Source of the DNA: Vitrella brassicaformis CCMP3155
Lineage: Eukaryota; Protista; Chromerida
Assembly (NCBI GenBank): GCA_001179505.1
Contig: CDMY01000113.1
Location: 124,881 to 188,880, forward strand
Direction: 5' to 3'
DNA: 64,000 bases
The translations under genes were made by a program, and so were the position numbers. This document shows, piece after piece, positions 6,973-53,400 of the stretch. Numbering within the stretch: the stretch's first letter is position 1; every line of letters begins with the position of its first letter. The notes below the pieces were generated by a model, which did not search any database, was not told the DNA's origin, and worked only from the letters and a program-made list of their open reading frames with translations.

Positions 6973-8898
6973 ATGCATGTTGCTCTGCGGTGTGTCCAGG
7001 TGGTGTTTGCAATGGTCCCGTCAACGCCGTCAGCGCCGCAGCCGGGGATCCTGCTCGCCCACCTCGCGGTGGAGGTGGCTATCGTGAGCTCTGCAGTCAC
7101 CCTGCCGACAATATTCCTGCCCCACTACATCAGGAACAAGTTTCGAGTGTCCGAGTACCAGGCGGTCGGCGCCCTCCTCCTGTCCACATACCCCCTCTGC
7201 GAGTTCCTCGTGGCCCCTCTTGTCGTCACCTTTGCAAAGGCATGCGGCCGGCTACCCCTCCTCTATGTCGGAGCCTTCCTGCACGCAATCGCCACGCTTC
7301 TCTATGGTGTTATGGACTATATGGTGCCCGATGACGACCCCAGGCAGCTTGTATATTATTTTCTGCTGGTCTTCTGTATGGCTGTCGGTGCGACAATGGC
7401 AATCACGATGTTCACGGCTGAGACCATCGATGCCTTCTCCAAGAGGGCCACAAATCAGGCGATGGGCGTGAGACAGGCGGCACTATCTGCTGGGGCACTT
7501 CTCGGCATGCCTCTTGGCGGCCTACTATATGACATTGGGGGTTTCATGGGGCCGTATCTGTTTGTCTGCTCTTTCTCGCTGGTGTCCGCTCTGCTTCTGC
7601 CATTCACAGTGGGCCTGCCAAGCTCCTCCAAACAATTCCCCGACTCTCCTCTTCCTCGTCCCTTTGAGAGTCGCGTCATATTCAGGACTCCCTGCACGAC
7701 ACGTCAAAAGAATGGAGACGAGGACCCGCGACAGATCAAGTCGGATGGAGAGGAGCCGGACGGCTTTGCCAAGTGGTACGGCTATAGTCCCGGCGAAGGA
7801 GACACGGATGCCGTCATGGAAGTGGCGACGGAACACACGCCCATTCTCCGCTCGCGTGGGTCTCCTCGCGCTGATGAGGACTCATGCACACCAGCAAGCG
7901 GATCGGAGGACGAGAGAACGAGGAACAGCACTGGCCGTGCTTGCCGTGCTGCGTCGACCGTGACGGTGTCCTCGAGTGCTCTGTGGGCCCTATCGACACT
8001 CAACGACCCGTGTGTGATAGTTGGATGTCTGACGGCGCTAATGAATGGCTTTGCAATGTCATTCTACTGCCCAATCATCGGAGAGCCGCTGTTTCAGTCG
8101 TTGCAGACCTCCTCTCATCTCAACGTCGGCTCACTCACCTGCATGTGAGTCAGAGAAAAGAAGAAGAATCTGAAGAAATCAACAGACGCTGCATTTTCCT
8201 GCCCCATCTTCCGCTTTCAGTATTGTCTTTGCCCGTCTCGTATCGTCTTGGCCCGTGGGTGCCCTGGCAGATCGCATCGGAGGCCTGCCCGTGCTCACAT
8301 CAGGATACATCGTCACAGGTATCGCCTATGGCTCTTTCGCATGCTGGCGCCAAGGCATCCAGTGGGCAGGGCATCCTACCGCCGTCGGTCTGCCGTCAAC
8401 CACGAGGAAGCTGGTGATGATATCCGTATCGGTCTTATCGCTCGGAGCGCTCGGTGTTGGTCTTAGTCTCATTGCAACCCCTTGTCCGGTCGTCATTCGG
8501 GATTTCCTCCTTCGCGAGGGGCTACGTCAAACGGAGGCCTCCATGCTCACGGCTTCATATGAGTGGGGCATGGTCGCCTTGGGCGCTTCGGCACGCTTGC
8601 GGGAGGCGGTATAGAGATGGTCGCCGGCTTCACTGGGGCAACGGCGACGTGTGGTCTTGCCATGTTGCTGTATGGGTTGTTTTTGGTGTTATTTTCCTCG
8701 CGAGTGGCCGACATGAAAAGTGAGCTGCCGCAGACGTATGAGAGGCTTGATGCATTGCAAAAGGGCGCAGATAAGCGTCATTGGCTGGAGCGTGAGGGGA
8801 CGGGATCCACTTATGGATCTAGTGCGCACGCGTCATATGATTCGCTCGACTCATCTGCTGCCATAGGACAGGGGGACAGAAGCGGTGGAGGGGCGTAA
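6973..8898 (+). CDS. Major facilitator superfamily transporter (SLC18/DHA1-like) with an apparent 1-nt frameshift at about 8587
   Basis: Multiple TM segments; GRLPLLYVG and ADRIGG loop motifs; GMPLGGLLYDIGGF; long central loop; intron about 8124-8220. Confidence 0.85.
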
Positions 8899-31396: not shown

Positions 31397-32977
31397 ATGG
31401 CTTCGGATGCTGCATCGTACGACGTCAGCTGTCAGGTGCAGCACACGCTGTTCAGGCTGTACTTCAAAAACAGACCACCGAAGGTCGTCAAGGCCGGCGA
31501 ATGCTTCGCTGCTGAGGTATGGTGGCAGCATGAAAGACACTGTCGTCTGACTCATCGCATCATGGTGTAGTGCCCTTTGCTGTTTGTTTGTCTATCTGTG
31601 GCAGCTCTATCTTGCGAACGAGCTGGTACGCTTGAACTGACCATTGGGGCCATAGTAGCCTAGAAGAGCATGTGTGTGTGTTCCCGTTCTCGTTTGGTTG
31701 TCAGGGCATGAGTCATGCAATGGTGCCCTCTGACTCATCATCCACACCATCCAGCAGCAGCAGCAGCAGGCAGTCTGTCGGCCTGCAGCTCACGGCCATC
31801 CCATGGACGCCAGTCACTGGCAGCCATCAATCCCCCGCCCCACCCTGCCAGCTGCATGTGGCTGTCAAGAACCCAAGAGACCTCCTTGTCAGGAAGAGCG
31901 GCAGTGCCTCGCTGCAGGTGGCCATCTACATGATGCCGTCCATGGGCAGGCGGCCGTCTTCTGTGCTGTCCGTCACGGCCGTCCTAGTGGTGCAGGTGGA
32001 TCCCAAGTGCGTGGCTGGCGGCGGCATTCTCAGGGCCGCATCGCTGCCATTCACTCTGGTGACCAACAACACGGCGGCAGGAGGGAGTAATGCCCTTGTT
32101 GATGCGTGGGATGGTTTCAGCGGCACTCGGCTGCTCGACCTATCACCCATCGGCCCTCTAGCCCTCATTTTGGAGCAGTCGGCTTACGAGGTGCTCGGGG
32201 GGAAGGTGTGGGATGCCGGATGGATGGTGGCGGAGTGTTTGCGGCAAGAGGGCTACAGAAGGTTGCTGCATGACCATGATGCTGGAAGGCACGCTTGCCT
32301 GGAGCTTGGGAGCGGCACGGGGGTCGGTGGCATCGCGTACTATCTCAGTGGCGGGATGCGGCAGCCGATGGTCGTGTGCACTGACCTACCTGACGTGATG
32401 CCCATCTGTGAGGCCAACCTCACTCTCAACTTTGGTGCAGGTAATTGATGGATTGCACACAGACGTAGCGATCGAAGGCATGCCCAGTGTGCGGTTTTAT
32501 CTGTGTGCAGAGTCTGATCGCAAGGCAGACATTCGCGGCCGCCCTTTGCCGTGGGGCGACGACGCGGCCCTGACGGCCGTCAGTGACGAGTTCGGCCCCT
32601 TCTCGCTCATCATGTTATGTGACGTCTTGTACAACAGCGACAGCTACGGGCCGCTAATCGCCACACTCCGACGAGCCATTGACACCAGCCATCCCCCAGC
32701 CATCCTCCTCAGCTACCGCTATCGAGACCCGTGTGTGGGGCAATTCTTCCAGCAGCTGGGCGACATGTGTCACATCTATGACATCACCGATGTGCCCCTG
32801 CCGGCGGATGAGCGGCGCATCGACGCGCCTGAGAGGCTGGCGGCCCCGCGAAGGCGATCCAATGTGCTGCGGGCGGCGCTGATGCGCGCTGGTAGTGATG
32901 GTGGTGATGGGTGTGGGGGTGGGGGGGCTTTGGTATCGTGTGAGGACATCTGGGTGCTGTGGTGCGTGCCACAGTGA
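31397..32977 (+). CDS. METTL21/Methyltransf_16-type protein lysine methyltransferase with an N-terminal extension (copy 1)
   Basis: GGKVWDAG, CLELGSGTGVGG, CTDLPDV, LPWGD, MLCDVLY and LSYRYRD motifs. Confidence 0.85.
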
Positions 32978-33241: not shown

Positions 33242-33885
33242 TCATGCTCCAAGGTCGCTGCATGTAGCAGACGTAGGTACGGAGACATGAGAAATCGATA
33301 CCGACAGATATAAAATGGAGGCAGCGATTTTGGGACCTGAGAGGCATACAGAAGGCCAACCAAGCAAACTAAAGGACGAATGGACAGGCACCGAAGCCAT
33401 CTCCCATCTCCCCTTTCCCGCCTGCCTGCCTGCCTGCCTGCCGGCCTGTCTGTCTGCGTACCCCAGTCCCGTCACGTCGCATACGAGTGGCTGCCCAAGG
33501 ACCTCCACCGAGAGCTCGTAGCTCCAGTACACGCTCGCTACAACGACGTGACTTTCATCCTCACAACACTGAAACAGACACACCCGAATCCACACAGCAA
33601 GTTATGAATCACGGGCCAAGATCCATGCTTCTGCGGTGCTTATTTCTTACCCGGCGACGGCTCCCAGGCACAGCAACGTCAGGATGCATAGGAGCTGTCC
33701 AAGGACCTCCACCGAGTGATCATAGGTCCAATATACGGCGACTACGAGCACGAAGAGGGTCGTGCAGGTGGTGAAGAGGCGGAGGGAAGTGACCTCCATC
33801 CTCAGCTGGCCTCCTGAGGTGGCCTGTACGTCCTCAGGTGGGCGCCAGGGCGGCGCGTCGACGTCCGTCTTGTCGCCGCTCTGCT
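33242..33885 (-). pseudogene. Relic carrying one full and one partial copy of a two-helix hydrophobic module; paralogue of the formin first exon
   Basis: MEVTSLRLFTTCTTLFVLVVAVYWTYDHSVEVLGQLLCILTLLCLGAVAG|VVRMKVTSL*, with an 82-nt intron (33569-33650) nearly identical to 38913-38994. Confidence 0.75.
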
Positions 33886-34499
33886 ATCGTTGCCGACCAG
33901 TGGGATGCCGATGGTACTTGATGACAGCTGCCTACTGAATCTCGATTGAGGGAGCCTTGCAGGGCCGTGCAGATACTGAAGAGGCCGAAGGATGTTGGCT
34001 TTATCCTCAGCTGGCCTCGGATGCTACGAAGAGCTCCCAAGAGGCAGCTGGTGTCACCGCCGGGTGGCGCGTGGACGTCCCGTCGCTGCTGTCTGTCGAT
34101 GACGATGGATACAGCTGCCAACTGAACCTCTACTTGCGGCTCGGCTCAAGGGACTACTCCCTCCTCACGAGCCGCATCGGCGGCACCATGGCGGGGTGCG
34201 GCAGGGGGAAGTGTCGGGGTGGTGCTGCTGCTCGTGAGGGTGGCCAGGGGTGGCGGGTTGGTGCTGCTGCAGGTGAGGGCAGGGCGTGTCGGGGTGGTGC
34301 TGCTGCGAGGGGAGGGGGAGGGAAGGGGTGCTGGAGTGGGAGGGGCAGGTGCAGGGCTGGTGGTGGGAGGGGCACGAGCCGGGGGGCGACGTGGGACGGG
34401 GGATGAACGAGATGAGGAGGCACCATCATCGCCCCACTGCCTCTCGGTCCACTGCCCATCCACATGTCGATGCAGGTGGCCTGGGACCGTCTCGTCAAC

Positions 34500-36920: not shown

Positions 36921-38480
36921 GAGGAGATGCATGTGTGCGGGAAGGAGCCACACAGCAGGTAGGAAAGGTACCCGCAGCTATGATGAGTCCAGCCGCGTCG
37001 GCCCACTCGGCGGGGAACAGACGATTGACCACCAATGACGAACCTGGCACGACACACATCCCAATCAGCAGACATATATGGCTGGACTCACTGGCCACTG
37101 TTGCTGTACCTCCCCACCTAATGTCACCAGGGCGATAGAGAAGAAGAAGTTCCAGTGGACACCGTACTCAGAAGTGGGCACCTGCACACACACGACACGC
37201 CCATGGCGGCATCCGTTTAGCCGCGCCGCCGTCCTTTCTCATGCTCACGTGGTAGTCGACGCCCCACACGAGGATCAATCGAATGGCGCCCAGCAGTAGG
37301 AGGGGCCACAGGCTGTAGGCTGTCACGCGAAGGGACGTTGGCGCTCTGCTGCCTGTGCAGCACACGCAAACACAGATGTAAAGCCACACAAAGCCACACT
37401 AATGCGTATGGTGCCTAAGTACCTCTGGCAGCTTTGGAAACCATGCCGCCCGCTAGGGTGAAGAAACCGACGCCCCCGTCCATCTGACGGAACAAGAGCG
37501 TGGACAACGCTCATCCACGGATGGATGGAGGGGAGAGGCGGTATGTTAGCCCTCAATTACTCACCACAGAGAATCCGTAGTTTTCAGTCTTGGCGAGCCG
37601 CCGCGGGTAGATGAAAAAGTCGACCGCAAGAATGGCTGACACATCCATCCATCCATCCATCCATCGGTATTCCGATCTTAAAGATCTGCCGGCGAACCAA
37701 TGTTTGTTCCAATGGCGCCAACAGCCCGATAGTCAGATATGTAGCACGGACGCCTGTAGAATCCACACACATGATCCAGGCACAGCCTTGTGTGGCCGTC
37801 ACAGCCTTCATTCTGCTCACTTTGGCTCTGCACAATGCGGCCGCGTTTCAGCTGACCTTCCTTAGGGAAACACACAACACAGACAAACAGACAAAGAAAC
37901 AAACAGGCAGGCAGGCAGGCAGACGGGAGCATCAACCAAGAGCAAAGTGCCGGTCTCTCTTCGACTACTTGTGTGCGTACCAGAAGTCGCTCGTGCGGAA
38001 GATCCGTCCATCAGCACCACTCGAGGCCTTTCGCCTCTCCGTCATGACAGCAATGGCGACCACGCCCAGCTGGCCGCACATGACGCTCACAGACAGGCGA
38101 GGCGCACAGAAGAGCACCAGCAGCGGCATCACTACCGCAAGGAACTCCAGTACAAAGCGGAGCACAAGGGAGCTCGGCCACCGCAGCAGCACCATGAGGG
38201 CGTGGCAGAAGAGAATAGACACCTGCAGACAGACAAGATACCAACCGGCACACGCACACAAGGGAGGGAGAGTGAAACACCGTCGTGTAGCTTTTGGGTG
38301 CCTCACTGCTGGAGATGCGCCGATGAGGAAGAGTTCCAGGTGTGCTGCGCCGGTCTCGTTGACATATGCCGTCTGCTGGATCTGGCTGTACTCATCCCTG
38401 GACACTCTGGTGCGGCAGACGCCATCATCAGGTGACAGCGCCACAGAAGGGCATTCGAACCATTCATGAATGAAACTCAT
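35726..38480 (-). CDS. PIGW: GPI inositol acyltransferase PIG-W/Gwt1, about 14 exons
   Basis: Spliced motifs AILAVDFFIYPRRLAKTENYG, MDGGVG, SEYGVHWNFF, FFSANREGILG, SRRL|SNLPF, KNMLAIFLL|ANQLTGMVN, ending LKFW*. Confidence 0.92.
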
Positions 38481-38553
38481 TGCTATAGCATCTACAAACC
38501 TTACTGGCTCTCACGAGATCCTCAGCGCCTCAGATCTCGAACGTCATTCGAAT

Positions 38554-38587
38554 TTGGAAGCAAGCTCGCATTGGAAGCAAGCTCGCA
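38554..38587 (+). promoter_or_regulatory. Tandem 17-bp repeat TTGGAAGCAAGCTCGCA x2 in the PIGW/formin divergent intergenic region
   Basis: Exact direct duplication; contains the AGCTCGCA motif also seen upstream of other genes. Confidence 0.5.
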
Positions 38588-38763
38588 TTTCGGAAACTCG
38601 TTTTTGGCCCTGCAAGGCTTCTTAGTCGAGGTTCAGTAGGCCGCGGAGTCAGCGGAACCAGAGAAGAAGCCATCGGCTCGACAGAAGAGCGGCGACAAGA
38701 CGTCGACGCGCCGCCCTGGCGGCCAGAGGACGTTAGCTCTTTAGCCTCGGAGGCCTGGTGAGG

Positions 38764-40078
38764 ATGAGGCTAACGTCCTTGGGCCTCTTCAGCACCTGCA
38801 CGACACTGTTCGTGCTCGTAGCCACCGTGTACTGGAGGTTTGAGCACTCGGTCGAGGTCCTCGGGTACCTCTTATGCCTGCTGACATGCCTGTGCCTGGG
38901 AGCCATCGCTGGGTAAGAAATATGCACCGCAGAAGCATGGATCTTGGCCCATGATTCATAACTCGTTGTGTGGATTCGGGTGTGTTGGTTTCAGTGTTGT
39001 GGGGCTGATGTGTGACATCATACGGCCACCAAGCCGTGTCTCTGCCCACCCGCCAGCCCATGGCGTCGCCAGCAACACGGTTCCGCTTCAGACGAGCCAC
39101 CTCGCCCACGGCACACCCATCCTCTGCTCGCACAACCCGGGCACAGACGTCATGAGCGTGAGCAGCACCCACCGCACCATCGCCACCTGGACAGCACCGC
39201 TCACTCTCACCCCACAGCACGCGTCACCCACCTCCGGCAACGTCAGCAACACAACTGCTCTCTCCTCTCCCGCTGTGCCCGAGTCTCCCCCACGCGCCGT
39301 CGGCCAGCCCGACGCAGAGGGGTTCTACGACGCCATGAGTGCCACCAAGGCGTCGGTGGGCTGCCAGGCGACCTACCTGTGGGTGGCACACCGTGGCAAG
39401 CAGGAGAAGGCGCAGACCGTCAAGGGGCGGGAGGAGGTGCAGGACCCGACGGTCCCTACCCCATCGCCGCAGCGGCAGCAGCGGCCACCGTCCAAGGACA
39501 AGAGGAGGAGCACCAGGGAGGGCGGCATCGGGGCGGACGTGCGGCGCCACAGCAAGATAGCGGACATGGCTGCCTACTTCTTGCCATTCCTCGCCAAGCA
39601 ACTGGGGGTCAAGAAGCTCAAGGACCTTCCCAACACACTCACCGGTCTGGCCAAGGCGGTGGCCAACCAGGACAAGACGGACACCAAGACTGACAACAAA
39701 CACAAGCCCGCCAGTCCCCCCAAGCAGACCACCCAGCCCCAGCCCGCTCCCGCGGCGGCTGGCACCGACACGGCCACTGCCAAGAAGCCCGCTGTGGCCA
39801 AGCCCAAGAACGGCATCCCTCCCCGGCCCAAGGGGAAGCTGCCCCCTCCCCCGCCGCCCCGGGGCAAAGGTCCGCCCATCAAGAAGGCGTCGGCTGCCAG
39901 CAGCGGTGCGCTGGTCAAGGCCAAATCGGCCGGCGGCGCGGCCCTCCCGCTGGGCAAGAAGCTGCACGTCACTAGCATACCTGACGATAGGTTGGAGAAG
40001 TCTCTCTTCAAGGTGAGTGAGGGGAAAAAAGGGCGGGTGCGAAGCGAAGCGGGAGGGAGGGAGATGAATGAATTGTTC

Positions 40079-40109
<31 letters not shown>

Positions 40110-43100
40110 GTGTGTATAGGAGACAGCGTTGGACGAGACCAAGTTGCGGATGGTGTTGGATATGGACGCCTTGCGGTCGGTGTTTCGGCCCGACCCGCCG
40201 GCCAAGCGGCAGGAGACGAAGCCGCACCACATTGCCGAGAAGGACCGCACTCAGCCACAAAAGAAGAAGATCCTCACTGACGGACGCGCACAGGTGGGCG
40301 TGAGGGAGGGAGGGAGGGAGAGGCCCACACCCCACGACCACACAACACCGATACCCGCAATGTTCCTCTATGTGCACGTGTGTGGTGCAGAACCTGTTCA
40401 TCACCGTTCGCCGGCTGACGTACAAGCCAGGCATCCTGTGCAACCAGATCCTGCTGCCGCTCAAGATTCCCCTCAAGCTCGATGCCATCGCACCCACCAT
40501 GCCGACCCCCCTGGCCATCCTCACGCAGCCCAACCACACCCCTCCGCCCCAGGCCGCCCTGCCGGAGGTGTCCGAGTCCCTGCGGTGCAGCGGCAGTGTG
40601 GTGTCGTTTGGCGCCCCGTCCAACAGGGGCAGCGAGCAGCGGGAGGGCGACCGCGAGTTGGGTTTGTTGCTGTATCGACTGCGGGACATGGTGTGTGGTG
40701 AGGGGGAGAGGAAGGCGTTTGAGCAGCTCAAGAGGGGACTGGCGGAGGACATAGAGCGTCTCAACCAGGCATTCCTGTGCCAGGTGGGTGCATCAGGCGG
40801 GATGGATGGACGTGAAGGACATACTCTATCCCTTCTTGTGGCCATCGTGTGTTGCGTGCAGGAGGAGATTACAGCGTTGAGGGCCTACGAGGGGCCCCTT
40901 AATGAACTGCGGGAGATGGAGCAAGAGGTACGTCACACACACAACACTCACCTGAACACACACTACGGAGGCCCGCCCTCTCACTCTGTGGGTGTGGTGC
41001 GAGTGGTGATGTGTGCAGCTCCTCCCATTTGCGTACGTCGAGCGGCCCCAGGCGCGCATATCAGTGCTGGAGATCGCTCTGACTGTCGAGCCTCGTTGCG
41101 CCGAGGTACTCAAGGAGATCCAACGGCTGCAGGAGGCATGCAAGCAGGTAACACACAGACAGATGAAGCAGACAGCAGCACGCGCCACTCCACCCCATAC
41201 ATTCTGTGTGTGTGTGCAGTTGCTGAGTTCCGATAGTCTCAAGCAGCTCTGCCACTTCTGCCTCCACCTCATCAACTGCATCAACGGGCACACAGGCACA
41301 CAAGCCAAGGTACGCACATAACACCAACCCCCCCCACACACATCACAACACATGTCTGATGTATGTGTCCATCCATGCAGGCACCTAGTGACACGAACCA
41401 CCCCTTTGGGCCCTCTCGCGCCCTCCCGCCGTCCAGCATCCCCCGTCCACCATTCACAGCAAAGTCCAAGCTGCCACCCCCACCTCCGAAGGTGCGGCCG
41501 CCCAACCACTCTGCGCGCAAGTCGCCCCCCACGCCACGCGAGGAGCTGCCAACACGGATCCCCGGGCCCTCCGCCACCACCAAGGCCAAGAATGGCGGTG
41601 GCGCGGCCAGCACTGCTATTAATGGCGGCAGAGAGGTGCATGGCGGCATCCGGGGTTTTCACCTGGGCGATCTGAAGAAGTTGGCGGATTACAAGGACAA
41701 GCGTGGCAGCACCAAGGTGACCCTGCTGCACGCTGTGGTGTGTGCGTTGACCGAGGTGGCGTACCAGCGGGAGGGGGGGAAGGGCATCGATACCAAGTGG
41801 CAACAACAGCAACAGCACAATGTCGACCAGGCGGTGAGAGAGACGCACAGGAAATGGGTGGGCGTGTCCATGGACAGCGCATCACAATGAATGCTGTGTG
41901 TATGTCGCAGGATGTCTATTCGGATATGGACGCGTCGCCGTCATCTAGTCGTTTCGGTTGGACCCCCCAGAGGAAGGCCGAGCTGCCTTTCCCCCCGTTC
42001 GTCACCAAGCTCAAGGAGGAACTGGGCACCCTCAGACTCGTCACACGGGGGCTAGGAGGTGCGTGACACCAACACACTCACTCACATACAAACACACGTC
42101 GATCCATCACATGTGTTGTGTTTGTCTTCCTTTCCTTCAGAGGACATCGACGGCCGTCTGTTGGAGCTCAAGCAGTCGCTCAAGTTCCTGGAGAAGGAGA
42201 TATCCATGCACGCCCGATCATACCGCCCCACGGCAGTCAACCTCTCGCCCACACAGATCACCAGCACCCCACCTCCCGTCATCCCAATGCACCAGCCCGT
42301 CTTCCACCAGCAGAGCAAGACACCTGCATTCGGTGAGCAGAGCGCCACGCCGCGCAGCCCGCCCATGAGCATCCGGATTGTCGAGGCGCCGAAAGACCCC
42401 GAGAGCCCCACCCGGCTCGCCAAGCCAGCCGTCAGTCCATCGCCCTCTCCAGATCTGCTGTCGCCCATCCCTCCCAAGCCCACCAACCAGCAGCTGAGCG
42501 GCGCCGAGGCCATATCGCCCGATGCTCTGTCGCCTTTGCGTCAGCCGTCCCCCTCCCCTCTGCAGAAGATGGCGGCCATGTCGCGTGAGGCCGCTGCGAT
42601 GGCGGCCAAGATCAAGTCGCCCAGGGACTCGATGCAGTCGGTGGCGTCCATGGCCAGCGCCATGAGCGGCGGATCGGCCGATGGGGGGCTGTTGGAGATA
42701 ATTGAGGAGGGAGAGGGAGAAATGGAGGGGATCACCAAGCGGGAGAAGAATGCACTGGACCGACTGATTGAGCTACATGACTATGGTAAGACAGGCAGCT
42801 AAGCAACACTGCACACCGGACCGACAAGAGGCCCTTGCCTTGGTGTGTCTCTGTGTTGTTTGTTCCTTCAGTTTCTGGCCAACTCAGTGAGATAACGTTG
42901 CAGTATGACGGCGTGGTCAAGGCCTGCCGTCGTGTCCTAGAGTGGTGCGCCGAGGAGGAGCCCTCCGACATCGCACTCCCCCACCCGCCTCCCAAGGCCA
43001 CTGCACCCACCGAGGGCGGCAACGGCGGCCCCGAGACGACGGGCGGTGGCGCGAGGGATGAGAAGAAGGAGACTAAGATCACCAAGAAGAACCTGCAGGT

Positions 43101-44264
43101 GCTCGACTCGGCCTCACGGCTCATCATCATGACCACTGACCTAATCAAAGCGTTTGAATCTGCCTGGTCAGCATGGAGAGCCACATGCGGGGGAGAGGGA
43201 AGATGTGCCGTGCTGATTGGTTTGGTTGTCTTGTCTTGTCGGTCTTCGTGTATGTGTGCAGGCGTGACGTGATCCGTTCGCCGGCATCGTATGAGAGTTT
43301 GGTGCCCACTGCGGGCTTCATCCGGCTGCTCAAGTTGCCGTCCCCCCCGCCAGCCAGAGCCCGACTCTCGCGCACTCCCAGGACAGCCATCAAACGACCA
43401 GCTCGCGAAGTACGCATACACACCACACACAACGCGACACACCACACAACACAAAACCCGCGCTCACGTGCTCTTTGTGTGGTTGCCGAATGTTCAGCTG
43501 ACGCCCCAGACGGCCCGCCCGTTGTTCGGTGACAGGTGCAGCAACAACTCGGTCGAGGACCGATTTCCCGTGCCGTTCGCCCTTCCCCTCGCCCAGCAGC
43601 AGGAGTCCCCCGCCATCCGTGTGGACGGTGCTGGTGACATCGACGAGCACCCGTCGCCCGAGGTGCCGTCCAAAAGCCGTCGCGTGTCGTTCGGCCCCAG
43701 CAAGATCCCTCTCCTGGACCTGACGCGACTGAGTGCTGCTGAGGCGGCCAAGGGCGGGCAGGTGGACGGGGGTGGCGACGAGGCGGCTAAGCTGCGCATG
43801 TCAGTGCCTTCACTGGTGCAAGCCTTCAACAGAGGGGCGGCACTCAGACCTCCCAACGCATTCGCTTCTCGCATCGTAAGCAAACATGAGGGCAGGGAGA
43901 GAGGGGAGTGATGACTCCCATGCATCCCTATCTCTGTGTGTGTTGTGTGTGTGTGTTGACTATACAGCCGGTGCGTGTGACTCCCCGAGACGAGAGCCGC
44001 CGTGCGCCCCTGCAGATGTCCCCCCCGCCCCAGGTGTTCAACATAGCCGCCAGCGACACCGACCAGGGCCGGGAGGAGCTGCCCGAGTGGAAGGACCACT
44101 TCTGGTCGCCGTCCGGCAACCCCAGTGCGGCCGCATCGGCATCGGCGTCTGCATCGGCATCATATCCGGCGTCGCGCACCGTGAGCCACATGGAGAGTGA
44201 GGTGTCGGGCCACATGGAGAGTGAGGTGTCGGCGGAGGACCCTGATGCGGCCGAGGCCGACTGA
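38764..44264 (+). CDS. Formin (FH1+FH2) with a predicted N-terminal two-helix membrane anchor
   Basis: LPPPPPPRGKGPP FH1; KKLHVTSI; DGRAQ|NLFITV (conserved Ile); GFHLGDLKKLADYK...TLLHAV. First exon 38764-38912 is spliced in frame through intron 38913-38994. Confidence 0.85.
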
Positions 44265-48055: not shown

Positions 48056-50120
48056 ATGGCGCAGCTGCGGCAGATCTCTCAGAGGACGCCAACATCAGAG
48101 CCCAGCGACGCCTTGCAGCCACGCCGGCCCGGCCTGCGCTTCCTCCCACTCCCTCTCGCCCTCTTCCTGACCACCCTGTGGCGTGCAGCTGCTGACCAGC
48201 TGCCGACAGAGCTCTTTCGCAACCATCGAAGCGCCGGCCGCAGGAAAGGCAGGACCCATGCATCCCTAATGTTCATCCCCTCTCTCCGCCTGTCCTCTCA
48301 TCAACGCAAAGCGTCGGCGAGGACAGACGCGGCTCGGCTCCCGCCGCTGGGTGGCTGGATGCCGATGACGTCTTCTTGTGTGCGTCTGCATGTGGTCAAG
48401 GAGCCAGAGGTGGCCGTGATCAGAGGTCTGAGTGAGGGTGAGATGGCGCTGATGCGGAAGCTGGAGAGCGAGGAGCAAGACTACCACGACCTGCAGAAGC
48501 AGCTTGAGAACCCTGACGTGTTCGCCAACCCACAGGTGTGTCACCTTATAAGAAATAAAGAATGATCAATGATTGCAGACTCAGTGTGTGTGTGTGTGTG
48601 ATTGTGTGTGTATGTGTGTGCGTCTGTGTGTGGGTTGGTATTGGGGTGCGTGTCAGGAGATGGCTCGGATCCAGAAGGGCATCGCAGCCAAGGAGGAGTT
48701 GATGAGCACCTTCCAGGAGTGGCGCAAGGCGCTGCAAGACCTGGACACCACAAAGGAACTGCTCTCGGCCGAATCAGGGTGAGCAAATGAGTGGAAATCC
48801 GATGACATACACTGCAGAGGACCATGGGGATGCACGGTGTGGTGTGTTGTGGGTGTCAGTGAGATGCGTGAGTTGGTGCAGATGGAGCTGGATGAGCTCG
48901 CGGAAAGGATACCAGAGCTCAAGCAGAAACTCGAGGTCAGTCATGGTGGGAGTGGAAGGAGGAGGGCAACATAGGCAGCATGCAAGTGCGTTGGTCTATT
49001 GGTTGGTCGGTCGATCAGATATTGCTGCTGCCGACGGATCCGAACGACGACAAGAACATCGTCATGGAGATCCGGCCGGGCACGGGCGGCGACGAGGCCA
49101 GCATATGGGCACAAGACCTGCTGCGGGTGGGTGAGGTGCATGGCGTCATCCAGTGTGGGGAGGGAGCATGGCCGTCCTTAGCCCACTGCTCCCTGTTTGT
49201 TGCTTGTGGCAGGTGTACCAGAAGTATGCCGGTGACCAGGGGTGGCGGTGCAAGATCGTATCGGTGAGTGAGAACACAACGCCAGCCAGCAGCGAGCCGG
49301 AAGAAGTGCACGTCTGCTGGCGTGTCTGGCTGTCCATTCAGGAGGAGCCACCCATGATGGAGGTGGAGGGCGACAAGGTCTACAGCAAACTCAAATTCGA
49401 GTCTGGGGTGCACCGGGTGCAGCGTGTTCCCGTCACCGAGACTCAGGTCGGCGGGGGATCAGCGCAGAGGAGCCGTCACGCGACATACACAACGCTTTCT
49501 CTCTTCTGTGTGTGCGTGTGGTTGCGGGTGTCAGGGCCGCATCCACACGTCCACCGCGACCGTGGCCATCATGCCTGAGACGGATGATGTGAGCGTGGAG
49601 CTCAACATGGATGACGTCGAGCTCAAGACGGCTCGGTCCAGCGGGGCGGGTGGGCAAAATGTCAACAAGGTCGAGACCGCCGTCGACCTCTTCCACAAAC
49701 CCACCGGCATTCGCATCTTCTGCCAGCAGGAGAGGTAAATACGACCTCTCCCCTCCATGCAGACATCCATCCATCCCCGTGCGGCGCGGTGCTGTGTGAA
49801 TCAGGTCTCAGCTGAAGAACAAGGAGACCGCCCTGAAGATGCTGCGGTCGAAGCTCTATGCGATGGAGCTGGAGCGTCAGCAGGAGGAGATCGCTTCCCT
49901 GCGGAAGATGCAGGTGGGCACCGGGGCGCGGTCCGAGAAGATCCGCACCTACAACTACAAGGACGCTCGTGTGACCGACCATCGCCTCAAGAGGAACTTC
50001 TCGCTCGACCAGTTCCTGGGCGGCAACCTGGAGGACTTTGTGGCCGCGTGCATCTATGCCGACCAGCAGGAGAAGCTGCAGGAGCTCAACGAGGAGACCA
50101 AGCTGGTGTCGGCTGCATGA
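48056..50120 (+). CDS. prfA: Nucleus-encoded organellar (probably plastid) peptide chain release factor 1
   Basis: [27 protein letters not shown]|GRIHTS (PxT), [26 protein letters not shown]; about 120-aa N-terminal leader with a hydrophobic stretch. Confidence 0.95.
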
Positions 50121-50455: not shown

Positions 50456-53400
50456 TCACTCCTTGCCTCCTTCATCACCGCTATGCTGAGACTCAGTTAC
50501 GTCCTCTACGCGGACGACAGTCTGGTTCTGCTTGCTCTTGATGCGGGCACCTACACTACCACCTGCCCCTTCACCGCTACTGTCGCTAGTGTGTCTGTCG
50601 TCCTCTGTTGCCCCGCCAGCATCAGGAGCGAAGCCCATGCCGTAGTAGGCCAGGTCACGCATGTCGTCGCTCAAATCAACCGCCACCGGGGGCCTCTGAG
50701 GCGCGCACACACACACGGCCCAATGCAATGTCTGTGTGGGGTGATGGTGGGGGAGGTGTGTTGGTCTTCGTTGCTCACTCACTCCGTCGTAGAAGACCAG
50801 CTTCTGCTGCGCAACGGGGAGGCCGAAGAGCCGCGCACAGAGCGTCTTGAGATCTCTGCGCACCGCATGCCATGTAGCACCAAAACACAGGGTGAGAGCT
50901 TGGCCGAGAGAGAGATCATTGTACCTGACGAGGAGTGTGGACGGGAGTTTCTTGGTGATGGGCGGCTTGTGGATGATCGAACTCGCACCGGCCTCCAACG
51001 TCACACCTGAAGAAGGCACAGAATACTTACATGCTGGCGCGAGCCTATGCCTCCGATCATTGTGTGGGATCCGTTTCATCAGTACTGATGAGTGTTTGCG
51101 CGATGGTCTGCGGCTGCCCCGACGCCGACGACACTGCACACACACGCAAACACGGGATGAAATTTGCTCGTCCGTCGCGGGGTGGGGTGCGCACCTACGA
51201 GTACTTCTCCATGGATTTCCCTCAGGCGCTTCTCGTTGACACCGCCCTGACACGACACACGCGCACACACGGACACAAATCAATCACGTGACATGCAGCG
51301 CAGCACTCGCACTGTGGTTGCCTGCCTGCGAGTCTGTTTACCCTCTCCTGTGGGTCTAGCTGCTTGACGGCGGGGTGGCCCTGTACGGCCAGCGACAGGA
51401 AATACCGCTCCGCACTCGTACGCTCGCGCGAGTCCACCTGACAGGGAGGGGTAAGATACTGAGCAGACTGTGTCTATCCGTGTCTGCTCACCTCGCCGCC
51501 GTTGAGGCTCCTCAGTTGCGGCAGCATGGCTATCAACAACTGAGAGCAGCAGGATACATACCATGATACGAGTTGCCTCACAATCATCAAGCCTCGAGTG
51601 AGTGGTTCCCTCACCTGTCTGGCCAGTCTGAGTCCGCCCTGCTTTGCGTCCTCAATGATGGGGTTGTGCTGCAGGCGCAACACACGCAGCGAGCTGAAGG
51701 CCGCACACACCTCACCCAGACTACTCCTGGCCATACAACACATGCACGTGGCGCGAATTTAGACAGCCTGCTGGTGTGGTGTGGTGTACTCACCAGTCCT
51801 TGATGCAGTTGTCTTCGAGCGAGAGCACGGATATGCGCCCGAAGACCGCCTGCACACCGGGGGTCGTGCCGAGGCATGATGACTGGGATGCCCCAGCTTC
51901 GCCCAGCCGGTTGTGGTTCAGCTGCAGTGCCTCCAGGCTGCACACATAAACGAACGAACACCACAAAGAGTGATCTCGTCTCTAATCTGTGTGTGTGTGT
52001 GTGGGGNNNNNNNNNNNNNNNNNNNNNNNNNNNNNNNNNNNNNNNNNNNNNNNNNNNNNNNNNNNNNNNNNNNNNNNNNNNNNNNNNNNNNNNNNNNNNN
52101 NNNNNNNNNNNNNNNNNNNNNNNNNNNNNNNNNNNNNNNNNNNNNNNNNNNNNNNNNNNNNNNNNNNNNNNNNNNNNNNNNNNNNNNNNNNNNNNNNNNN
52201 NNNNNNNNNNNNNNNNNNNNNNNNNNNNNNNNNNNNNNNNNNNNNNNNNNNNNNNNNNNNNNNNNNNNNNNNNNNNNNNNNNNNNNNNNNNNNNNNNNNN
52301 NNNNNNGGGGGGGGGGGGGGTCTGTTTGCTCGTCTGTTTGCTCGTTATACCTGTCCATGTGTTGCAGCTGCAGCCTGTCGAAGAAGTCCCAGCTGCTGAT
52401 CAGATTGTCGTCCAGATCAAGACACCTCAGGCCGCCAAGGTGGCCCTCCACATGAGGCCCCTTCTGCTGTGTGACGGTCTCCCCCAGCCTGTTTAGCTTG
52501 AGATGCAGCTCACGCAGAGAGGGGAAGTGGCCTGACACGCGACACACCTGACACACATACCCAGCACGCAGACGCACGGCCACACACATAAAGGAGCTAG
52601 CTAAGTCATCCACCCGTTGTGCGCCGACCTCAGTCCACTTGATGTGTGTGCCGTTGAGTGAGAGCATCTCCACTGAGGGGCAGCTCACGTGTCCCTCGGA
52701 GGACTCGTCGATGGCTTTGAATCGGTTGCGGTTGAGGCTCAGGGACCGCAGGTTGGGCATCGACTTTGCAATACGGAACACCTCGCGCCAGTCGCACAGC
52801 AGATTGTCGTCCAACACGAGCACCGACACGTCTGACGTGGCAGAGAGGGAGTGAGAGAGGGTTGAATGGATCAATCGTGCGCCACAAGTGTCTGATGGAT
52901 GGATGGCCTACTTCCGAGTGTCGATGGGTGTGTGAGGCCATTTGATGCATCGCCTGCGGCAGGTTGCTGGCATGGCAGTGATGCGGTGCTGATGCTGCAG
53001 TTGTCGAGCAGCAGCTCCTCGAGGTTCTCGTAGTGGGAAAAGTACTCCCGCGCCTGACGTCACAACAAACACACAAGTGGGTGCCGGTGTGATGAGATGA
53101 CGATCCTTCTTCTCCCTGCCTGCCTGCCTGCCTGCCTGCCGGTCTAAGTGCGCACCTTATCTTGCCCGACGAACTGCATGGGTTTGGTCCTGCTGGTCTT
53201 GGCATCTACCACCGTCAAGTCACCCTCCACATCTGACAAATGACATCCAGCAAACGCCACGCCATGGCATTCGCATCAATCAATCGAGTCCTTCTACTGT
53301 CGCGTGCCGTGGCTGACCTTCTCCCTGCATGGCGTATTTGTCCACCAATGCGCTCAGCAGATCCCGACCGCCAGACACCTTGCCGGGCTTGACGAACGAC

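Follow-up and report, generated by a model that had tools for sequence, protein, structure and literature searches.

Does a formin from an alveolate carry its own membrane anchor? The question is raised by a locus of Vitrella brassicaformis CCMP3155 within a 64,000-nt stretch of genomic DNA (contig CDMY01000113.1, positions 124,881 to 188,880), hereafter the window, to which all coordinates refer. A sequence-only reading of this stretch had proposed a short first exon, spliced in frame onto a long open reading frame with FH1 and FH2 regions, that would equip the encoded formin with two N-terminal membrane helices.

Transcript evidence for the first exon

Nine sequencing runs from four studies were found, and four of these runs were compared with positions 37600-43500 (5901 letters). 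Contigs of X3 and X4 cover this region without any joint and read through intron 1, hence both runs behave as genomic DNA. In X1 (study P1) and X6 (study P4), thirteen joints with GT..AG or CT..AC ends were found, indicating that these runs behave as cDNA assemblies. The features at the start of the formin gene are as follows:

38599-38763, + strand: 5′ leader of the formin mRNA, devoid of ATG; RNA-type contigs start at 38599 (X6) and 38690 (X1)
38764-38912, + strand: coding exon 1 of the formin, 149 nt (49 codons plus 2 nt), encoding Met1, hydrophobic segment 1, a loop and the first 18 residues of hydrophobic segment 2
38913-38994, + strand: intron 1 of the formin, 82 nt, phase 2, GTAAGA...TTTCAG, skipped in X1 and X6 and kept in the DNA contigs of X3 and X4

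The ATG at 38764-38766 and the in-frame TAG upstream at 38734-38736 stand where the sequence-only reading had placed them, and exon 1 opens with MRLTSLGLFSTCTTLFVLVATVYWRFEHSVEVLGYLLCLLTCLCLGAIAG, as had been read. Intron 1 is indeed a phase-2 intron that maintains the frame: its donor GTAAGA lies at 38913, its acceptor TTTCAG ends at 38994, and the joined GG/T encodes Gly50. Across the exon 1/exon 2 boundary the spliced message reads ...GAIAG-VVGLMCDIIRPPS, in which the frame of the long ORF is retained. In X1 as well as in X6, precisely 38913-38994 is absent from the contigs, with matches on the shorter side of 222 and 255 letters, respectively, and no mismatches, which establishes the predicted 38912/38995 junction.

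The transcripts start upstream of the ATG and not downstream of 38995, the contigs beginning at 38690 (X1) and 38599 (X6), although assembled contigs are blind to the true transcription start site and to rare or minor isoforms. An ATG scan of the + strand found none in 38551-38763, hence ATG 38764 is the first AUG of the assembled formin mRNA, and translation presumably begins there. The same junction contigs of X1 and X6 continue through exon 2 to 40012, skip a GT-microsatellite intron at 40013-40119 and run through exon 3 into exon 4, that is, into the start of FH2. Each junction contig has roughly 50 further letters; with intron 3 taken as 40294-40390, these correspond to 3 nt at the end of exon 3 followed by 48 nt of exon 4, and the resulting exon 3/exon 4 junction reads ILTDGRAQ/NLFITVRRL, a recognisable FH2 motif. 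Because the same contigs run from exon 1 to exon 4, exon 1 is physically linked to the beginning of FH2.

Gene model and identity of the formin

The transcript-based model comprises 12 exons encoding 1276 aa, and its frame remains open over 11 GT..AG introns. Downstream of intron 1, it consists of the following features:

38995-40012, + strand: exon 2, with the end of segment 2 (to 39022, ...VVGLMCDII), the linker, FH1 and, from 39953, the first FH2 residues
Exon 2, between segment 2 and FH1, + strand: P/A/T/S/K-rich orphan linker of about 265 aa
39815-39880, + strand: FH1, IPPRPKGKLPPPPPPRGKGPPI, aa 324-345, 25 residues ahead of the start of FH2
About aa 370-1190, + strand: FH2 region, with two long low-complexity inserts
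40120-43271, + strand: the part of the FH2 region in exons 3-12, with GT..AG joints in X1/X6, Pfam matches in E6 and E8 and ESM Atlas matches in E8
40120-40293, + strand: E3
40391-40783, + strand: E4
40862-40927, + strand: E5
41019-41147, + strand: E6
41220-41309, + strand: E7
41381-41833, + strand: E8
41911-42058, + strand: E9
42141-42785, + strand: E10
42872-43166, + strand: E11
43262-43532, + strand: E12, the last exon, provisional together with its stop at 43532, the transcript comparison extending to 43500

The proline-rich FH1 lies directly N-terminal of FH2, and the FH2 motifs GFHLGDLKKLADYKDK...TLLH and ILTDGRAQNLFI can be read by eye downstream of it. Pfam scans for FH2 (PF02181, gathering score 34.8 bits) were performed on single exons and not on the spliced protein. 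E6 matches positions 155-192 of the profile with 13 bits alone and, with read-through into E7, with 19.8 bits (E 4.7e-4); E8 matches positions 214-254 with 16.8 bits (E 0.004). These scores (13-19.8 bits) fall below the gathering score because the exons were scanned singly; the two matches are independent, belong to one family and are co-linear along the profile. Furthermore, in the ESM Atlas, all 30 named matches to the C-terminal half of E8 (aa 75-151) were FH2 clusters, with a top score of 0.94. E4 and E11 gave no family match in Pfam and no usable match in the ESM Atlas, hence this FH2 is very divergent, and a PDB sequence search with E8 and E4 returned no meaningful match. Taken from its sequence, the gene is almost certainly a formin, and its product presumably nucleates actin.

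Several observations concern the low-complexity parts of the gene. The Pro/Ser/Thr-rich inserts in FH2 are located at 41381-41640 (E8) and 42200-42700 (E10), and the first of them contains a second poly-proline tract, KLPPPPPKVRPP. In exon 4, the stretch 40439-40529 has non-zero depth and is spanned by none of the contigs listed, the longest ones, for the four DNA and RNA runs; the assemblies are probably split there by low-complexity or repeated sequence. At 42530-42742, in the low-complexity insert of exon 10, one DNA contig of X3 carries 8 substitutions and 2 one-base deletions relative to the window, which the remaining runs match exactly; allelic variation, a difference between strains or a second copy could account for it.

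The predicted membrane anchor

The N-terminus of the spliced protein contains two hydrophobic segments separated by a short loop:

38770-38835, + strand: hydrophobic segment 1, aa 3-24, Kyte-Doolittle 1.69, marginal
38836-38856, + strand: loop RFEHSVE, aa 25-31, 7 residues with a net charge of -1
Ending at 39022, across intron 1, + strand: hydrophobic segment 2, aa 32-59, Kyte-Doolittle 2.56, strongly TM-like

Hydropathy was calculated with the Kyte-Doolittle scale over 19-residue windows and complemented by a crude Hessa sum. The latter is -2.5 kcal/mol for segment 2 and about +1 for segment 1. By hydropathy prediction, segment 2 provides a TM-like helix N-terminal to FH1-FH2. Segment 1 is marginal, as is typical for a signal peptide or for a weak helix whose insertion depends on a partner. 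The Kyte-Doolittle threshold for transmembrane helices is exceeded by both segments, strongly by segment 2, in agreement with the earlier reading of the pair as a TM hairpin or as a signal peptide plus TM. The remaining ~1200 residues of the formin have no other hydrophobic part, their highest window reaching a Kyte-Doolittle value of 1.24. As a background, 944 stop-free chunks of 64 aa were taken from all six frames of the whole window; six attain the value of segment 2 and not one equals the pair, whose hydrophobicity is thus greater than composition would produce.

Charged residues are found at the N-terminus (Met-Arg), in the loop and past segment 2 (Arg60 and Arg64). This distribution would fit an orientation with the N-terminus in, the loop out and the C-terminus in. 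Concerning the two-segment N-terminus that had been proposed for this formin, the exon, its splicing and its hydrophobicity are thus borne out, and insertion into a membrane is what the hydropathy predicts. On these grounds the protein is very likely a membrane-anchored formin, whether as a hairpin or through a signal peptide followed by a transmembrane segment. Either topology, insertion itself being a prediction, would place FH1-FH2 on the cytosolic side, where a functional formin has to act.

Relatives of this N-terminal part were sought in several ways. A word-index search with exon 2 (339 aa) found no relative among candidates of 186-593 aa. An exhaustive HMMER search with exon 2 against 1.84 billion representative proteins gave 0 matches, the self match included, and says little on orthologues; because the self match is missing, the proteins of this genome seem to be absent from the library. 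Metagenomes scanned with exon 1 and with the conserved part of FH2 in E8 yielded no confirmed relative.

Genomic neighbourhood and a paralogous cassette

The locus has a GC content of 59% and introns of 70-110 nt. A neighbouring gene is arranged head-to-head with the formin on the - strand (37600-38550), with CT..AC introns at 37754-37820, 37857/37861-37980 and 38223-38306, the second of which has a boundary that differs by 4 nt between X1 and X6 (37857 vs 37861). The transcript contig of this neighbour ends at 38550, about 50 bp from the start of the formin contig, and because of this proximity the two genes may share a bidirectional promoter. Other genes nearby (1607-2371, 6973-8148, 31672-32977 and 49358-49735) belong to ordinary, ubiquitous eukaryotic families according to Pfam; the families among the neighbours include an RWD/DFRP_C protein, an MFS transporter and a Methyltransf_16 lysine methyltransferase. 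An exon of a bacterial-type peptide chain release factor, with its GGQ motif, was also recognised by eye among the neighbours, and a scaffold gap of 300 N is located at 52007-52306.

About 5 kb away from the formin lies a second version of its 5′ end:

33494-34108, - strand: three inverted copies of the formin 5′ module, arranged as a degenerate tandem array with a period of about 205 nt
33966-33555, - strand: middle copy, with leader, exon 1, intron 1 and ~14 nt of exon 2
34108-33960 and 33541-33494, - strand: truncated units flanking the middle copy on either side

The middle copy is 79% identical over 419 nt to the formin 5′ module (leader from 38606) and retains the ATG, an open frame, both splice sites and both hydrophobic segments. 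Its frame stops nine codons past the intron, leaving an ORF of 59 codons. Between the exons of the copy and the formin, differences by codon position number 9/6/17, mostly at the third, dN/dS of the exon 1 peptide is 0.39 (p 0.02), and the motif HSVEVLG at the loop is identical. The paralogue therefore offers independent evidence that selection at the protein level acts, or once acted, on the exon 1 peptide. A chance ORF in a GC-rich leader was also considered for exon 1 and is ruled out by the background test, the in-frame splice and the dN/dS.

Intron 1 is more similar between the two versions than the exon. The introns (38913-38994 vs 33569-33650) are identical at 76 of 82 positions (92.7%) and the exons at 117 of 149 (78.5%; p 0.005). 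The conservation of intron 1 likewise far exceeds that of synonymous sites (p 0.0002), the dS of the exon being 0.49. A structured RNA hosted by the intron was rejected, with 0 Rfam matches and folding z-scores of 0.06 and -0.93; a gene-conversion tract or a regulatory element is a possible cause of the conservation.

Formin exon 2, moreover, begins much like an exon-1 unit, as is the case in the array. This similarity points to uptake of part of such an array by the formin or to derivation of the array from it, the sequences being silent on the direction.

Topology and alternative explanations

The explanation favoured here, which we regard as probable, is a hairpin-anchored formin of 1276 aa translated from the first AUG at 38764. 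The mRNA would start near 38599, and exon 1 together with the first 9 codons of exon 2 would encode two close hydrophobic helices with the 7-residue loop between them. Segment 1 would serve as an uncleaved signal-anchor at the ER and segment 2 would re-cross the membrane, so that the two helices would form a hairpin whose N- and C-terminal ends both face the cytosol. Candidate sites for palmitoylation are five cysteines that lie within or next to the helices (12, 38, 42, 44 and 56). Through the hairpin, the disordered 265-aa linker, FH1 and FH2, which together make up the cytosolic part, would be held at a membrane surface. There, FH1 would recruit profilin-actin and the FH2 dimer would nucleate and elongate filaments, such that actin would grow from the anchoring membrane. 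We infer both the hairpin topology and which membrane is used.

A rather unlikely alternative is a cleaved signal peptide in segment 1 followed by one stop-transfer transmembrane segment in segment 2, which would give a type I protein with an ectodomain of ~8-12 residues and a cytosolic FH1-FH2, an arrangement of signal peptide and transmembrane segment that plant class I formins use (PMC2386819). Segment 1 does lie at the extreme N-terminus behind Met-Arg with only moderate hydrophobicity, and small residues near Ala20/Thr21, noted by eye, form a possible cleavage site. However, its h-region of about 22 residues is long for a cleaved signal peptide, and HSVEVLG, the motif of a loop of only 7 residues, is the best-conserved protein stretch between the paralogues, which fits a structured hairpin turn. 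It is because of the length of this h-region and the conservation of the short loop that the hairpin is favoured over the signal peptide.

The two other explanations would dispense with a membrane-tethered cytosolic nucleator. Exon 1 could be mainly leader, with functional translation from Met103 (39152) or later and a soluble formin as the product. The base at +4 of AUG 38764 is A rather than G, and the linker is orphan sequence that need not be under constraint. Such a downstream start is nonetheless improbable: AUG 38764 is the first of the mRNA and has a purine (A) at -3, a phase-matched splice keeps it in the frame of the whole ORF, the exon 1 peptide is under purifying selection relative to the paralogue, and the next in-frame AUG, Met55, falls within segment 2. 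Least probable of all, and only barely credible, is that the N-terminus is a secretory or plastid signal leading into a lumen or that FH2 is degenerate. The S/T/P-rich region past segment 2 would agree with the former, and the divergence of FH2, its long inserts and its sub-threshold family scores with the latter. Against them, a strong second hydrophobic segment directly after the first does not follow the pattern of a signal plus transit peptide, the C-terminal bulk remains cytosolic when two segments are present, and FH1 stands directly ahead of co-linear FH2 matches. A bipartite plastid signal in particular is ruled out by the architecture, the second strong hydrophobic segment occupying the place of the transit peptide.

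Comparison with known formins

According to a 2024 review, there is no current evidence for integral-membrane formins outside plants, and this architecture is a plant synapomorphy (PMC11194305, Box 1), in agreement with the sequence-only reading, which had taken integral-membrane formins as the hallmark of plant class I. Rare non-plant formins with a signal peptide and a transmembrane segment, possibly convergent, had been described by Grunt et al. 2008 (PMC2386819) in Caenorhabditis, in Helobdella and, twice, in Naegleria. The updated records of these cases no longer carry signal peptides (PMC11194305, Box 1). The Vitrella formin resembles these putative formins in being predicted to be membrane-inserted outside plants, and differs from them in that its anchor exon is backed by spliced transcripts from two studies. 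In a full-text literature search, the terms "transmembrane formin" and "integral membrane formin" occurred, apart from incidental mentions, in plant papers only, and no report from stramenopiles or alveolates was found.

Homologues of FRM1 and FRM2, the only formins mentioned, were reported in both chromerids by Woo et al. 2015 (PMC4501334). The apicomplexan and chromerid formins FRM1, FRM2 and FRM3 share with the Vitrella formin described here the FH1-FH2 nucleator organisation and the same broad lineage. FRM1-3 are targeted by soluble N-terminal regions (TPR-like, PTEN-C2-like), whereas the N-terminus here consists of hydrophobic, TM-like helices. In mammals, INF2-CAAX is a formin that is held permanently on an endomembrane, where it nucleates actin; its anchor is a C-terminal prenyl group, in contrast to the N-terminal helices of the Vitrella formin.

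Plant class I formins, such as Arabidopsis AtFH1 and AtFH5, are the closest parallel in having an integral-membrane anchor N-terminal to a cytosolic FH1-FH2, which in Vitrella is predicted, and presumably in their insertion at the ER and vesicular delivery (PMC11194305, PMC2386819). They possess a cleaved signal peptide, a Pro-rich ectodomain that binds the cell wall and one transmembrane segment, whereas the Vitrella formin has two hydrophobic segments 7 residues apart and an N-terminus for which no sequence relatives were found. A Pro-rich extracytoplasmic domain between the segments is absent, RFEHSVE being all that separates them, hence the protein lacks an ectodomain and could not bridge to a wall. 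Because this ectodomain is missing and the anchor has no detectable relatives, the Vitrella formin was not filed as class I. A separate origin from plant class I is plausible, judging from the missing ectodomain and from the 339 aa of exon 2, for which no relatives were found among 1.84 billion representative proteins.

Possible origin of the anchor and implications

A more far-reaching proposal, which is tentative and more doubtful than the anchor itself, is that no integral-membrane formin outside Archaeplastida had transcript support before this one and that its anchor was gained by capture of a ready-made 5′ module and not by slow drift of the N-terminus. It is likewise conceivable, with no greater confidence, that the captured module consisted of the leader, the hairpin-coding first exon and the intron of a locally duplicating cassette, of which the two-helix ORF of 59 codons would be the other copy. 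If this is true, a single step, the capture of an exon by way of an inverted segmental duplication, would have turned a soluble actin nucleator into a membrane-anchored one.

Formins in Apicomplexa drive organelle inheritance and motility. If the anchored formin of Vitrella is borne out, the direct insertion of an actin nucleator into a membrane would have evolved more than once, here with a design different from that of plants, namely a hairpin without an ectodomain. It would offer a simple test case for actin nucleation on endomembranes in the lineage leading to Apicomplexa, and the nearby paralogous cassette would make visible how the anchor may have been gained.
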